The translations under genes and the position numbers were made by a program. A stretch of DNA of 64,000 nt from Zygnema circumcarinatum SAG 698-1b. Lineage: Eukaryota; Plantae; Zygnematophyceae. A model generated the notes under the pieces. The model was not told where the DNA came from, ran no database searches, and saw only the letters and a list, made by a program, of their open reading frames with translations. Positions 32,470-35,124 of this stretch are shown one piece after another. Positions within the stretch are counted from its first letter, which is position 1; each line of letters opens with the position of its first letter. Where the stretch lies: NCBI GenBank assembly GCA_037447605.1, contig CM074804.1, forward strand, positions 7,169,909 to 7,233,908, in the 5' to 3' direction.

Positions 32470-34780
32470 CCTTTAAAAAAACTCCAAATAGAAAGGGTGT
32501 GTATGTAGACAGTAAAGGTGTGAAAATAACATTTTCCTATTATTAATTTTTTTTTTTTTTGCGGTGAAAACGGCGTTACAAGAAGGTTTTAGCACAACGT
32601 TTCTTGCTGGGACAGTGTGGGACCTGCGAGAGGTTGTTCTTCGCAATGTAAGGAAGGACATTGGAGGGTTTGTGGGCAAGCTTTGTTTGTAGCAGCTTTG
32701 GCTACAACTTTGGCCATCTCTAGGAGTCGTTCCTGCAATCTGGAGACACACATGGATACCCGTATTTACCCGTGTTCACATCTAGCTAAGATTGTGTAAC
32801 AACACCACGCTACCACACCTCGTACCGCAACAAACCCCAAAGGCCATAATCATCGCCATGAGGCTTGTTGCTCAAATCACAAGCCTGAAATGTTTTTCTG
32901 ACATTGTATTCGTCAAGAGACGAAAAGGGATGTGTGTTCTCAGGGCGGGCGTGTTGCGCTTGTAGCCAAGCTCTCCACACAGCACGCGTGCTGACATGGA
33001 GAGGCTGCAACAGGGCCGTAGTATGCAGTCACTGTCTTCAGCTTGCCGTCGAGCAAATTGTTCTCCACCTGCGCAAGTCAATACCCCGGCAAGGAAGGTC
33101 GGCCAAGGCGTCCATTATGCTGAAGGCAGAGAACACGTGCCTTCTGTGCCTGACGCAAAGGGGCTGATGAAACCTACACAGTTGCAGCTATTCCACCTTC
33201 CTTTCTACAGCCCTGGCGACTTCACAATGAAAGTGAAAGTGAACAGGCCTTTCACCTTCACCATCTCCCCGCCTGCAGTGCAGGAACATACTTTCGTAAA
33301 TTCCAGCAACCAACAGTACTACCGACGCAACTGACCTATCCAATAACTGCACGATGGTGCACCTTGAAAATGACAGACTTAGCCCAGAGTACAACTAACA
33401 GGCTCCACCATTTCTGCGCGCCAATGCATCACATACCTGGTAGGTCAAAGGCGGGGAGGAAAGGGAAGCCATCTGCTGTAGCTGTTCCACATCTACATTG
33501 CGTGGAACGAAGAAAACGATACTGGGAGCCACCTTGCAAGCAATGTTGAAGAGATCGAAGCTGCCAAAGCGAAAAGGGAAAAAGCGAGTTACGCCATTGC
33601 CTACCATTAGTTTCTGCAAATAGTGTACAGCGCTATGCGTGTTAGATGTGATTTCCCATCAGCTACATCACCATCAAGAATTCAATCTTTGCAAGAACTA
33701 AACTAGAAAAATGAGAGATCAGCGATAAACTTGGCTCCGTGGTTAACAGCAACCCTGAACTGTTCGTAAAGCACATACCCGCTGCATGGTTTCAACATAG
33801 TCTGCAGATCATATACCGTCACTTTACTGTATTGAGGGCCTCCCCAAGGAGGAGACAAAAACACAACGTCTGCCTGCGCCCATACCTTGTTTGAATGTGA
33901 TCGAATTCAACCGGGCAACACCATCCTTGCCCGGTCATTCAGAGTACCAAATGACTGTCAATCCAGTTTCAAAATCAGAACATCTGCAAAAAACGCAATT
34001 AAACGCAAGCAAATACCGCATGCTGCATCAAACTTCATACGCAGTCTTGCAGTGCATACGATAGTTCAAAGAAAAAAGACATTCATTTCTTGAAGCCATT
34101 TCATTTACCTGTATATGTCCTTCTCTCGTTTCCACCTTGACAGCCCACACAAATACTTCCTGCTGTGCACCATGCTCACCTTCATCTTTGGAGCAAGCTG
34201 CAGAAAGTCTCCCACAATGAAGTCTATTTTGTCCTCTACACCGTAGATTGCTGCATTACGACGGGCCATCTCAACCTTTTTCGGATCAACATCAATGGCC
34301 AAAACATGGCGACATCTGCACCCCAGCTAATGGGCCGAATAAGAGATGGAATTTCGGAGCCAGCCTCGCCTACACCACTGACAAGCCTGCAGTACTCCAC
34401 GCTCTGCCACTTCCGTCACTGTGACCTGGAGTTGTAAAGTTCCATCCAAGATGCTCCAGCCCGTCATCATACAAGAAGTTTGTATGTTCTGCTGTTCTGT
34501 CCGCCTTATATATCCATCACCCCTTCATGTATCAGACCATGGATGATTTATCTTGTCAAATACTCACGTAAGTGCAAACTGAATGGCGTTCCCTCCACAG
34601 CCAGTGAACGCATCAACAAGAAGTGGTGCTGCGCAGCGCTTGGCTTGGTGCTTGGCAATAGCCTCTGGAGTAACGGAGTACCAGCCTTCGTCATCCATAA
34701 CGATGCCTTCATCAAAGAGCGAGAATAGTGCATATCGCTGGTGCCAATACTTACGCGTCAGCAGCCCCCAACTACCGCTG
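32470..34780. repeat. Segmental duplication copy A (3' part of TGS1 plus 3' flank)
   Basis: Near-identical to 36166-38337 over about 2.2 kb. Exons show only substitutions; introns show several indels. Confidence 0.95.
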
Positions 34781-35124
34781 TCGTGCTTACTGCGTTTTTG
34801 TGTAATTGGGCCCTTGTTGCTCCTATTTTGGCATCGCGTTTTCTTGTGGCTGATCGTCCGTTGCTTCAGACTGCTGTTGCTCATGCTGATGATGGTGGTC
34901 TTTCGTTCCAGGTTGCATTGCGTGATGTCCTTGGTCTGCTTCCTTCTAGTGCCCAGGCTCCTGCGCCCCCGTTTGCTTCCCTTGCCGTTGAGTTTGTTCC
35001 GCGTGTCGAGCTCACTTTGACTGCTACCCTTGCCGTTGAGTTTGTTCCGCGTGTCGAGCTCACTTTGACTGAGGAGGTTGTTGCTGTTGAGTTTTTTACC
35101 CTTTTTACGGCTTTTCTTTCCCAT
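32940..35124 (-). CDS. Chimeric short TGS1-like trimethylguanosine synthase (novel basic N-terminus plus MTase domain), 346 aa
   Basis: Exons 35124-34568, 34315-34180, 33873-33779, 33560-33437 and 33068-32940 total 1041 nt with no stop or frameshift. Intact [35 protein letters not shown] and [13 protein letters not shown] context caacATGG. Confidence 0.8.
34979..35071 (-). repeat. In-frame 48-bp tandem duplication ([15 protein letters not shown] x2) in the novel N-terminus
   Basis: cccttgccgttgagtttgttccgcgtgtcgagctcactttgactg occurs twice with period 48. Confidence 0.9.

Follow-up and report, generated by a model that had tools for sequence, protein, structure and literature searches.

Partial and chimeric gene duplicates reportedly recruit flanking sequence; Hun Hunaphu of Drosophila is said to be an example, and Katju is said to have reviewed such duplicates in 2012. 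To our knowledge, LINE-bridged tandem duplications have been documented so far mainly as somatic events in tumours. An L1-bridged tandem duplication has been described by Rodriguez-Martin et al. 2020 (Fig. 7; PMC7058536). Short forms of TGS1 have also been described. A human short TGS1 isoform is produced by limited proteolysis, is nuclear and is linked to snoRNP maturation, according to Girard et al. 2008 as relayed in PMC2709555. Angiosperms have a WW-less "eukaryotic-type" TGS1 paralogue beside a WW-containing "plant-specific" TGS1 (PMC8440268). In the human enzyme, fragment 618-853 (PDB 3GDH) is active and fragment 653-853 (3EGI) is inactive (PMC2709555), and an N-terminal helical extension (L634-S671), with residues K646, Y647, W648, E667 and F670-T673, is needed for m7G binding (Monecke et al., PMC2709555).

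Here we describe a short second copy of TGS1 in a 64,000-nt stretch of the Zygnema circumcarinatum genome, hereafter the window. The short TGS1 copy is a real, expressed, young chimeric gene, separated from its full-length parent by a LINE fragment (Table 1). We lean, by a little, towards regarding it as a lineage-specific, LINE-bridged chimeric gene that starts in LINE antisense sequence and is predicted to encode a short, basic TGS1 enzyme.

Table 1 Features of the TGS1 locus, with positions in the window
Feature	Positions	Strand	Description
Parent TGS1 CDS	36600-40173	-	7 exons, 679 aa; all introns GT-AG; single stop
Parent TGS1 exons	40173-40042, 39901-38767, 38411-38123, 37937-37802, 37494-37400, 37180-37057, 36728-36600	-	
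Duplicated unit, upstream copy (U)	36201-38336	-	3' part of full-length parent TGS1
Duplicated unit, downstream copy (U')	32492-34780	-	94-97% identical to 36256-38336
LINE fragment	34781-36200	+	5'-truncated, frameshifted non-LTR element; fills the entire 1.42-kb spacer between the TGS1 copies
21-nt tandem repeat, 4 copies	35520-35604		Inside the LINE fragment; interrupts ORF2 homology
Short-gene coding exons	35124-34568, 34315-34180, 33873-33779, 33560-33437, 33068-32940	-	
Short gene, exon 1	34568-35397	-	5' UTR from ~35268-35397 down to 35125; RNA contigs
Short gene, exon 2	34180-34315	-	Post-motif-I region; RNA joint 34315>34568
Short gene, exon 3	33779-33873	-	SPPWGG; identical to parent
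Short gene, exon 4	33437-33560	-	Identical to parent
Short gene, exon 5	32450-33068	-	CDS to stop 32942-32940, then 3' UTR
Two uORFs	35183-35358	-	ATG 35358 (51 codons), ATG 35272 (29 codons)
48-nt tandem duplication	34974-35069	-	2 copies, 98% identical, in LINE-derived coding part
Probable gene-conversion tract	33400-34040		Divergence 0-2%

In the parent gene, the WW domain lies in exon 2 (Pfam PF00397, E 3e-8) and the methyltransferase domain spans exons 3-7; the Methyltransf_15 profile and PDB 3GDH were both matched. No homologues of the N-terminal exon were found in the protein collection, from which the proteome of this organism is seemingly missing. Self-BLAST paired 33363-34354 with 36989-37976 (97.2%, 994 nt), 32601-33220 with 36256-36880 (94.4%, 625 nt) and 34422-34780 with 37977-38336 (94.2%, 360 nt), each with E = 0. 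The offset between paired segments is 3555-3660 nt, and a separate repeat search was concordant. With a weaker 50-nt match (78%) that stretches the unit to 32492/36201, the same-strand units (32492/32601-34780 and 36201/36256-38336) are ~2.2-2.3 kb long at 94-97% identity. Unit U' covers 213 nt at the 3' end of the KYW exon and four more exons, stop codon included, along with four introns and ~450 nt of flanking sequence on the 3' side. Since the breakpoint at 34780/38336 falls within parent exon 3, the KYW exon, what was duplicated is four whole exons and the 3' 213 nt of a fifth. The initial annotation had correctly recognized a same-strand TGS1 duplicate of ~2.2 kb but had counted all of the last five exons. 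It was likewise right that the N-terminal part including the WW domain is missing, though the loss amounts to ~447 aa by alignment rather than ~460 aa: KYW begins at parent residue 458, and homology with the short copy begins at approximately residue 447-450. The whole WW region is absent from the copy, so the short gene does not qualify as a plant-specific WW-type TGS1. A processed retrocopy was rejected because the short copy retains all four introns, which are homologous to those of the parent.

It is highly improbable that the assembly created the two copies by misjoining alleles or haplotypes in tandem, one of them with a LINE in the KYW exon. In an independent DNA run (X15), copy-specific contigs 34245-34571 and 33191-33392 had depths of 60 and 76, compared with 69 for a parent-specific joint and 74 for the unique single-copy flank. 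These equal depths fit two loci rather than two alleles, for which half depth would be expected, and they speak against the concern raised at the outset that a single copy had been misjoined. The copies also differ by 3-7% with large indels, and by 10-30% at the edges, far beyond usual allelic divergence. The 3' side of the LINE adjoins sequence only 78% like the downstream flank of the copy, which an allele mis-join would not give; moreover, in an allele disrupted by the LINE one would expect the 5' half of TGS1 on the far side of the element, where the window has the 3' end of the parent. What speaks for a mis-join is the junction between the LINE 3' end and the parent (36191-36300), which none of the four runs covered (depth 0 at 99% likeness), so that the tandem order of the two loci rests on the assembly.

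The LINE fragment consists of the part of ORF2 that follows the reverse-transcriptase domain, together with the 3' part; as would be expected after 5' truncation, the RT domain is missing. The + strand ORF of the spacer had 25 phmmer matches (best E 4e-20), the long ones carrying RVT_1 upstream of the part aligned to the spacer. Four tblastn pieces (34771-35295, 35318-35431, 35587-35838 and 35795-35932) cover residues 703-1053 of a 1096-aa ORF2 protein (P0110). LINE homology starts no more than 10 nt from 34780 and extends toward 36200, where homology between the flanks of the copies resumes, and DNA depth in the spacer climbs from ~100-180 to 540-4200 toward the LINE 3' end. The direct repeat flanking the LINE is the 2.2-kb TGS1 unit itself. 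No clean poly(A) tail was found at the LINE 3' end, where there is only an A-rich stretch (~36190-36205), and no defined endonuclease motif is visible at the LINE 3' breakpoint; the + strand is A-rich at 32480-32492 and 36190-36201. A Pfam search of the spacer ORFs returned nothing useful, and a protein atlas search with the + strand ORF gave no recognition (best score 0.76); the LINE emerged only from the exhaustive phmmer search. Other identities for the spacer were considered. An inverted-repeat search found no terminal inverted repeats, so the spacer is not a DNA transposon, and Rfam had no match over 32000-42600, which leaves no SINE or tRNA-like part. A composition of several unrelated repeats was largely dropped once the tblastn pieces proved colinear along a single ORF2 tail, an account that leaves out a 66-nt piece of very high copy number (36090-36154) elsewhere in the spacer.

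RNA evidence consisted of contigs from three runs (X1, X2 and X3) of three studies, matched at 99% likeness; these contigs carry no strand, so overlapping transcripts might in principle have been merged in the signal upstream of 34568. All four GT-AG introns of the short gene were spliced out in copy-specific contigs and joints. The copy-specific joint 34315>34568 had depths of 95, 100 and 41 in X1, X2 and X3, respectively, and an X1 contig of 1262 nt (depth 90, no mismatches) was spliced 33066>33435. In exon 5, an X1 contig continues ~518 nt past 32450. Exon 1 was covered without mismatches by X1 contigs 34568-34737, 34708-35008 and 35042-35268 and by X2 and X3 contigs 35042-35397; contig 34708-35008 crosses the LINE/TGS1 junction over seven copy-specific positions. 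The depth of X1 is 0 in intron 4, so its signal is RNA and not DNA. Copy-specific RNA depth was similar to or above the remainder left for the parent, a rough, same-order comparison in which the parent was estimated from shared-exon depth. An aberrant splice form in the shared region (33613>33779) adds 53 nt. Transcription of the short gene starts inside the antisense strand of the LINE, at ~35270-35400, and the 21-nt repeat is situated around the region upstream of this start. The checks that had been proposed on transcription thus came out in favor of the gene: use of the 35124 exon, the junction of the novel exon with KYW and the four introns were all found in contigs of the three studies, and transcripts do not begin inside the methyltransferase region, since contigs extend without a break from 34568 to 35268 (X1) or 35397 (X2, X3).

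The model of the short gene built from the RNA joints is an intact ORF of 1041 nt in five exons, encoding 346 aa. The joints carry a +1/+2 ambiguity in the cut, and after this was applied all four introns read GT..AG. This model confirmed the canonical splice sites and the intact 346-aa ORF with DAFTGCGGN and SPPWGG that had been predicted from the genomic sequence. The ATG (35124-35122) has a good start context, with A at -3 and G at +4, and an in-frame stop 27 codons upstream bounds the ORF. Both uORFs terminate ahead of this ATG and are included only in the longer 5' isoforms (X2/X3 contig to 35397). In exon 1, codons 1-114 are LINE antisense and codons 115-186 are TGS1 (KYW helix and motif I). 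Because the spacer is a LINE on the opposite strand, the Lys/Arg-rich residues 1-114 of the short protein are the antisense of LINE ORF2. The N-terminus of ~120 aa had been called "unrelated"; it is indeed not TGS1, but phmmer and tblastn trace 114 residues to the antisense of LINE ORF2. The 48-nt duplication within it equals 16 codons, so the reading frame is preserved and a 16-residue peptide is repeated.

The minus strand of this N-terminal region contains only 9% T, and in each of its three frames a stretch of 114 codons or more is open. Of 5000 dinucleotide shuffles, 8% were open over at least 114 codons and 2-3% additionally had a suitable ATG. The antisense frame is therefore open partly because of the scarcity of T, and a frame open over 114 codons is only mildly to moderately unlikely by chance (2-8%). 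No homologue of the N-terminal part was found in 5.8 billion proteins, so there is no sign of its conservation; extra coverage of the N-terminus by proteins P0001 and P0053 was set aside as low-complexity noise. No protein near-identical to exon 1 was present in the collection, where the proteome of this organism is seemingly absent. A single-sequence AlphaFold model of exon 1 had a pLDDT of 49, including the true TGS1 part, and no confident N-terminal fold. The predicted head is very basic (net charge +27, pI 11.7) and probably disordered, and its basic character suggests a nuclear or nucleolar localization of the predicted short protein.

The TGS1-derived part is well preserved. AdoMet-binding motif I (VDAFxGxGGN) and the cap-binding/catalytic SPPWGG are both in the 346-aa product, and the copy keeps all 40 columns with a conservation of 90% or more across 93 TGS1 homologues, the KYW helix included. 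Only four conservative differences from the parent occur in 222 aa (98% identity in the domain), all at variable columns, and all four amino-acid differences were noted for exon 2. When Pfam PF09445 was tested exon by exon (gathering score 22 bits), only exon 2 passed (E 6.9e-9, 35.9 bits); exons 1 and 4 gave sub-threshold partial matches (17.3 and 18.8 bits) at consecutive profile positions. Exon 1 matches 107 TGS1 proteins (best E 3e-23), among them many plant TGS1 proteins of 200-350 aa, as well as PDB 3GDH (E 1e-18). KYW and EGWYSVTP of the copy align with human AKYW...EGWFSVTP. Since the copy begins ~10 residues before KYW, the helical extension is kept, including the equivalents of K646/Y647/W648 and E667-P674; its first 8-10 residues have diverged, with 4-7 replacements relative to the parent, and the first helix is partly alignable. 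The short protein would most likely be able to convert m7G caps to m2,2,7G. The predicted protein is without the acidic, WW-containing 447 residues of the parent and would therefore be recruited and localized differently.

Divergence between copy and parent is patchy, from 0% in mid-unit to 10-30% at the edges. No mismatch occurs across 33890-33591, introns included, and the longest identical run is 222 nt, against an expected count of such runs of 4e-5. This pattern points to gene conversion between the TGS1 copies and to a duplication older than the average identity implies. The coding differences (six synonymous, four replacement) are too few to tell whether the copy is itself under constraint or reflects a constrained parent through conversion. 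Outside the tract, exonic divergence is 2.2%, below the 3-7% of introns and UTRs; a neutral copy would be expected at ~3.1% and a constrained one at ~1.6%, so the observed value is intermediate.

These observations bear on whether the short gene has a function. It is possible, if short of probable, that it is a functionless partial duplicate, expressed only through chance firing of the LINE antisense strand, with an ORF kept intact by conversion from the parent and by a T-poor spacer in which stop codons seldom arise, and with a protein that is unmade, unstable or unselected. The demonstrated conversion tract, a frame whose openness composition alone would give at 2-8%, the lack of power in dN/dS, an N-terminus with neither homologues nor confident fold, the uORFs of the longer isoforms and the aberrant splicing in the shared region all fit such a duplicate. 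Against it, the diverged edges indicate an old event, yet the CDS has acquired no stop or frameshift and has lost no splice site, in exons outside the conversion tract as well. Exons outside the tract have also diverged less than introns and UTRs, RNA depth is of the parent's order in three studies, and the breakpoint keeps exactly the minimal active domain. That the short gene is instead a selected cap hypermethylase with a separate nuclear or nucleolar job (snoRNAs, telomerase RNA), to which a strongly basic head would direct the catalytic module, this head having been born de novo as LINE ORF2 antisense in the retrotransposition that duplicated the domain, is a tentative proposal that we consider rather doubtful. 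It is improbable that the short gene works chiefly through the parent, with its protein serving as a catalytic-domain-only partner or competitor in TGS1 self-association or its RNA titrating regulators of the parent. Yeast Tgs1 self-association is reported to be necessary for efficient trimethylation (PMC4466884), and near-identical exons and 3' parts are common to both genes; the data hold no specific pointer to this role, which would require translation or a defined RNA target.

Beyond the duplication, the LINE spacer, the spliced junction-spanning RNA and the complete domain, all of which were observed, the LINE-bridged chimeric gene that we favor involves inferences on how the bridge formed, on the start codon and on the synthesis, activity and localization of the protein, as follows. 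It is hypothesized that a LINE retrotransposed near the TGS1 3' flank and that its 5'-truncated cDNA became attached, probably on the sister chromatid, to a break in the KYW exon. The resulting order would be downstream flank, partial TGS1 copy, LINE on the opposite strand and full TGS1 3' half. Deprived of the TGS1 promoter, the partial copy would be transcribed from the LINE antisense start (~35270-35400). In the shorter transcripts, translation from the first AUG (35124) would pass through 114 antisense-LINE codons directly into the TGS1 frame, on an mRNA spliced at the four inherited introns. The predicted 346-aa protein would join a basic head to a complete catalytic module, consisting of the N-terminal helical extension and the class-I methyltransferase core, and gene conversion with the parent would hold the middle of the copy nearly identical.

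If so, the full birth history of a new gene could be read at one locus: the antisense strand of one LINE would have given a promoter, a start codon and a third of the predicted protein to the duplicated minimal domain of an essential RNA-modifying enzyme. The long acidic WW protein and the short basic catalytic one would form a natural separation-of-function pair with which the non-catalytic half of TGS1 could be probed in plants. Should the protein not be made, the locus would be a clear case of conversion and base composition keeping a partial duplicate gene-like.

As in L1-bridged duplications (PMC7058536), the direct tandem repeats of the TGS1 locus meet exactly at a single short, 5'-truncated LINE, whose 3' end marks one breakpoint and whose truncated 5' end connects to another break further along. 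Those cases are somatic, megabase-scale and from human tumours, whereas the TGS1 duplication spans 2.2 kb and is a germline one, fixed in an assembled plant-like genome. The TGS1 event is also old enough for decay, gave an expressed gene and has no recognizable endonuclease motif or poly(A). An evolutionary LINE-bridged duplication yielding an expressed gene would tie this mechanism to gene origination; should the short gene prove to be selected, its duplication, promoter and new coding sequence would all trace to one germline LINE event. As in partial and chimeric duplicates, an incomplete tandem copy takes a new end from non-homologous neighboring DNA and becomes a new transcription unit; unlike in those duplicates, the promoter, 5' UTR, start codon and 114 codons would come from an antisense retrotransposon ORF that also mediated the duplication. 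Like the angiosperm pair (PMC8440268), the locus combines a long TGS1 that has a WW domain with a shorter one that lacks it, but the angiosperm types are old separate lineages and the present copy is a recent one of a WW-type gene, 98% identical in the domain. The copy keeps the extension that distinguishes the active 3GDH fragment from the inactive 3EGI, as read here from sequence alone. As in the human short form, so far as PMC2709555 relays it, an N-terminally shortened catalytic-domain form would exist beside the full-length form. The human form is described there as proteolysis of one gene product, whereas here it is predicted from a separate gene with a foreign N-terminus; if the short enzyme is indeed selected, this lineage would reach by gene birth what humans reach by proteolysis of TGS1.

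The downstream partial duplicate of TGS1 (the copy) is a real, expressed chimeric gene, and both it and the full-length upstream TGS1 (the parent) lie on the minus strand. The parent is complete, with seven exons, GT-AG ends at every intron and a 679-aa product; exon 2 carries the WW domain (Pfam E 3e-8), and exons 3-7 the cap guanine-N2 methyltransferase domain. Comparison of the window with itself gave three same-strand, colinear blocks, and a more sensitive comparison added a 50-nt match that an insertion in the copy parts from the main block. This gives a repeated unit of about 2.2-2.3 kb, in agreement with the partial tandem duplication of about 2.2 kb proposed in the initial annotation. 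The proposal that five exons were copied holds for four whole exons; the fifth is only partial, with the breakpoint at 34780 (= 38336) inside the parent's third exon (38411-38123), about ten codons ahead of KYW, a conserved motif near the start of the copied domain. A processed retrocopy is ruled out, as all four introns are kept. The last intron is partly non-homologous (33221-33362 vs 36881-36988), with ~112 extra nt in the copy and ~77 different nt in the parent, which is an indel or replacement within a unit otherwise 94-97% identical. The sole assembly gap within the window (10163-10172) is remote from the locus.

Features of the TGS1 locus (window coordinates)
Feature	Coordinates	Parent counterpart	Orientation	Basis
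Duplicated block 1	32601-33220	36256-36880	same strand, colinear	94.4% identity, self-comparison
Duplicated block 2	33363-34354	36989-37976	same strand, colinear	97.2% identity, self-comparison
Duplicated block 3	34422-34780	37977-38336	same strand, colinear	94.2% identity, self-comparison
50-nt match	32492-32541	36201-36250		78%, more sensitive comparison
Copy exons 1-5	35124-34568, 34315-34180, 33873-33779, 33560-33437, 33068-32940		minus	RNA-confirmed splice sites
LINE pieces	34771-35295, 35318-35431, 35587-35838, 35795-35932			tblastn

The copy's downstream flank also holds an imperfect inverted repeat (32433-32475 and 32492-32541; 76% over 45 nt); next come a T14 run at 32557-32570 and a ~55-nt insertion missing from the parent's flank. 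Near TGS1, at ~41800-41960 on the + strand, a Walker-A-type motif (GPSGAGKKT) seen by eye seems to belong to what we take to be an AAA+/clamp-loader-like gene adjoining TGS1.

If the copy and the parent were two alleles, each would give half the depth of the flank. In an independent DNA run (X15), copy-specific contigs had depths of 60 (34245-34571, including a 67-nt intron insertion missing in the parent) and 76 (33191-33392), the joint specific to the parent's intron 4 had a depth of 69, and a 6.7-kb single-copy flank had 74. This near-equality (60-76 vs 74) argues against alleles, including alleles mis-joined in tandem. The left junction is covered by DNA and RNA contigs. The right junction (36191-36300) had zero depth in all four runs, the DNA run included, at 99% likeness, with both sides covered, which local polymorphism, an error in the assembly or filtering by the tool could explain; the tandem order thus rests on the assembly.

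Expression was assessed by aligning contigs of three RNA runs from three studies (X1, X2 and X3) and of the DNA run on 32450-36300 at 99% likeness, a threshold at which contigs from the parent's diverged parts fail, so that ambiguity is confined to the near-identical middle (exons 3 and 4). Every RNA run contained the joints 34315>34568, 33872>34179, 33560>33779 and 33066>33435; their ends read CT..AC on the + strand and GT..AG on the minus strand, so that splicing of all four introns is confirmed. The first of these covers two copy-specific letters (depth 95, 100 and 41), and a 1262-nt contig of X1 runs from exon 4, spliced to exon 5, on through the copy's 3' UTR with 0 mismatches. Use of the exon at 35124 across the novel exon/KYW junction, which the initial annotation had anticipated, is seen in a 301-nt contig (34708-35008) that spans the LINE/TGS1 junction and seven copy-specific positions with 0 mismatches, at a depth equal to that of the adjoining exon-1 contig (138). 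Contigs, which are strandless, reach 35268 (X1) and 35397 (X2 and X3), past the proposed ATG; transcription of the copy therefore starts within the antisense strand of the LINE, and not inside the methyltransferase region. X1 had zero depth in intron 4 and past 35288, and hence represents RNA with no read-through from the parent. In X2, short contigs from exon parts common to both genes were roughly twice as deep as copy-specific ones, and in X3 roughly three and a half times as deep; in X1 they were no deeper. This places copy expression roughly, from assembler word depth, in the same order as the parent's.

Alternative splicing was observed in the stretch common to both genes (33561-33886; ~37181-37507 in the parent) and is assignable to neither copy: an acceptor at 33613 brings in 53 extra nt and a frameshift, and a donor at 33886, within intron 2, is joined to exon 4. 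An X1 contig with the copy's last exon extends ~518 nt past 32450 (31932-32450), a segment with no convincing ORF; this is either a 3' UTR of >1 kb or overlap with a convergent transcript.

On the RNA-confirmed splice sites, the copy encodes the predicted 346 aa without interruption, including DAFTGCGGN and SPPWGG, with an in-frame stop 27 codons 5' of the ATG. The first AUG of the shorter transcript form is at 35124 in good context (A at -3, G at +4), and longer forms carry two short upstream ORFs.

Divergence between the copies is uneven. There are 0 mismatches over 33890-33591, which is mostly intron; divergence reaches 4-7% in neighbouring introns and the 3' UTR, and 10-30% in the outermost 30-60 nt at either edge of the unit. 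At the mean divergence, the expected number of runs of 222 identical columns is ~4e-5, and gene conversion between the copies would be the simplest reading. Conversion would make the event older than the average divergence of 3-6% suggests, and the copy's intactness would be owed partly to copying from the parent. Exons outside the putative tract differ by 2.2%, a value between our own estimates of ~3.1% for a neutral and ~1.6% for a constrained copy; six exon changes are synonymous and four are replacements.

The 1.42-kb spacer between the genes (34781-36200) holds a 209-codon ORF on the + strand that neither Pfam nor Atlas recognised. Exhaustive searching with phmmer gave 25 relatives (best E 4e-20), the long ones with an RVT_1 reverse-transcriptase domain just upstream of the matched region, and four colinear tblastn pieces in differing frames jointly span residues 703-1053 of a 1096-aa protein. 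These matches identify the spacer, by homology, as a single 5'-truncated, frameshifted non-LTR retrotransposon in sense orientation on the + strand. It meets the TGS1 breakpoint, to within 10 nt, with its truncated 5' end, and its 3' end faces the parent's 3' flank. Contig depth in the DNA run climbs from the single-copy level at the 5' end (100-180) to 540-4200 toward the 3' end, as expected for a LINE family with variably 5'-truncated copies. A 66-nt element occurs at 36090-36154 and 46165-46230 (86% identity); the bin 36062-36190 has a depth of ~4200 in X15 vs ~75-150 for single-copy DNA, which makes the element a very high-copy short repeat, either embedded in the LINE or forming its 3' end. 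In X2, a joint at 35443-35651 (depth 15, GT..AG on the + strand) skips a 21-nt tandem repeat and hints at a spliced LINE-sense transcript, from here or from a near-identical copy.

Given this orientation, the copy's head (residues 1-114, starting [11 protein letters not shown]) is encoded by the antisense strand of LINE ORF2. The N-terminus described as unrelated to TGS1 is thus fused in frame as stated, and now has a source. This source also accounts for the head's composition: the coding strand there has 40% A and 9% T, so that stop codons are few on either strand. The frame contiguous with TGS1 is open over 140 codons, and each of the three minus-strand frames has an open run of 114 codons or more; among dinucleotide shuffles of the same stretch, 8% reach at least 114 open codons and 2-3% additionally have an ATG that far up. 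An internal tandem duplication of 48 nt keeps the frame, 48 being divisible by three. No protein resembling the head was found in a large collection that lacked the organism's own TGS1, and single-sequence structure prediction was uninformative. The head has 34 Lys+Arg in 124 residues, a net charge of +27 and a pI of 11.7 (4.7 for the whole parent); its basic clusters make targeting to the nucleus or nucleolus a reasonable guess.

The 222 aa of the copy from KYW onward carry four differences from the parent (H/R, I/V, R/K and I/V), all in exon 2 and at columns variable among TGS1 proteins, and the copy keeps 40 of the 40 columns that are at least 90% conserved among 93 homologues. Its alignment to the active human fragment 3GDH begins one residue before KYW. 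In human TGS1, the helical extension L634-S671, with K646, Y647 and E667-T673 within it, proved essential (Monecke et al., PMC2709555); a 653-853 fragment is inactive, and 17 further residues restore activity (PMC2709555). The copy begins about ten residues ahead of KYW and retains KYW and EGWYSVTP, and would therefore hold essentially the minimal active module.

The locus resembles L1-bridged duplications, in which one short 5'-truncated LINE sits precisely at the joint of a direct tandem duplication, modelled as cDNA primed at the integration site joining a second break on the sister chromatid (PMC7058536). Here, the first nick would lie ~400 nt 3' of the TGS1 stop codon, with the KYW exon holding the second end. 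Neither a poly(A) tail nor an endonuclease motif was recognised, and the two equivalent sites show only an A-rich context; we therefore infer LINE bridging from the topology.

The short TGS1 gene adds a further case to kinds of event already known. Partial and chimeric duplicates that take in sequence from their surroundings have ample precedent. What is particular here is that a single retrotransposon event appears to have provided the duplication together with the promoter and new coding sequence, and that the breakpoint preserves just the active domain; we consider function at the protein level about evenly balanced. LINE-bridged tandem duplications are known from tumours (PMC7058536), and in angiosperms long and short TGS1 forms occur side by side as separate WW and WW-less family members (PMC8440268). 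PMC2709555 cites a nuclear short isoform of human TGS1, produced by proteolysis beside the long form, which the suggested nuclear targeting of the short gene would parallel.
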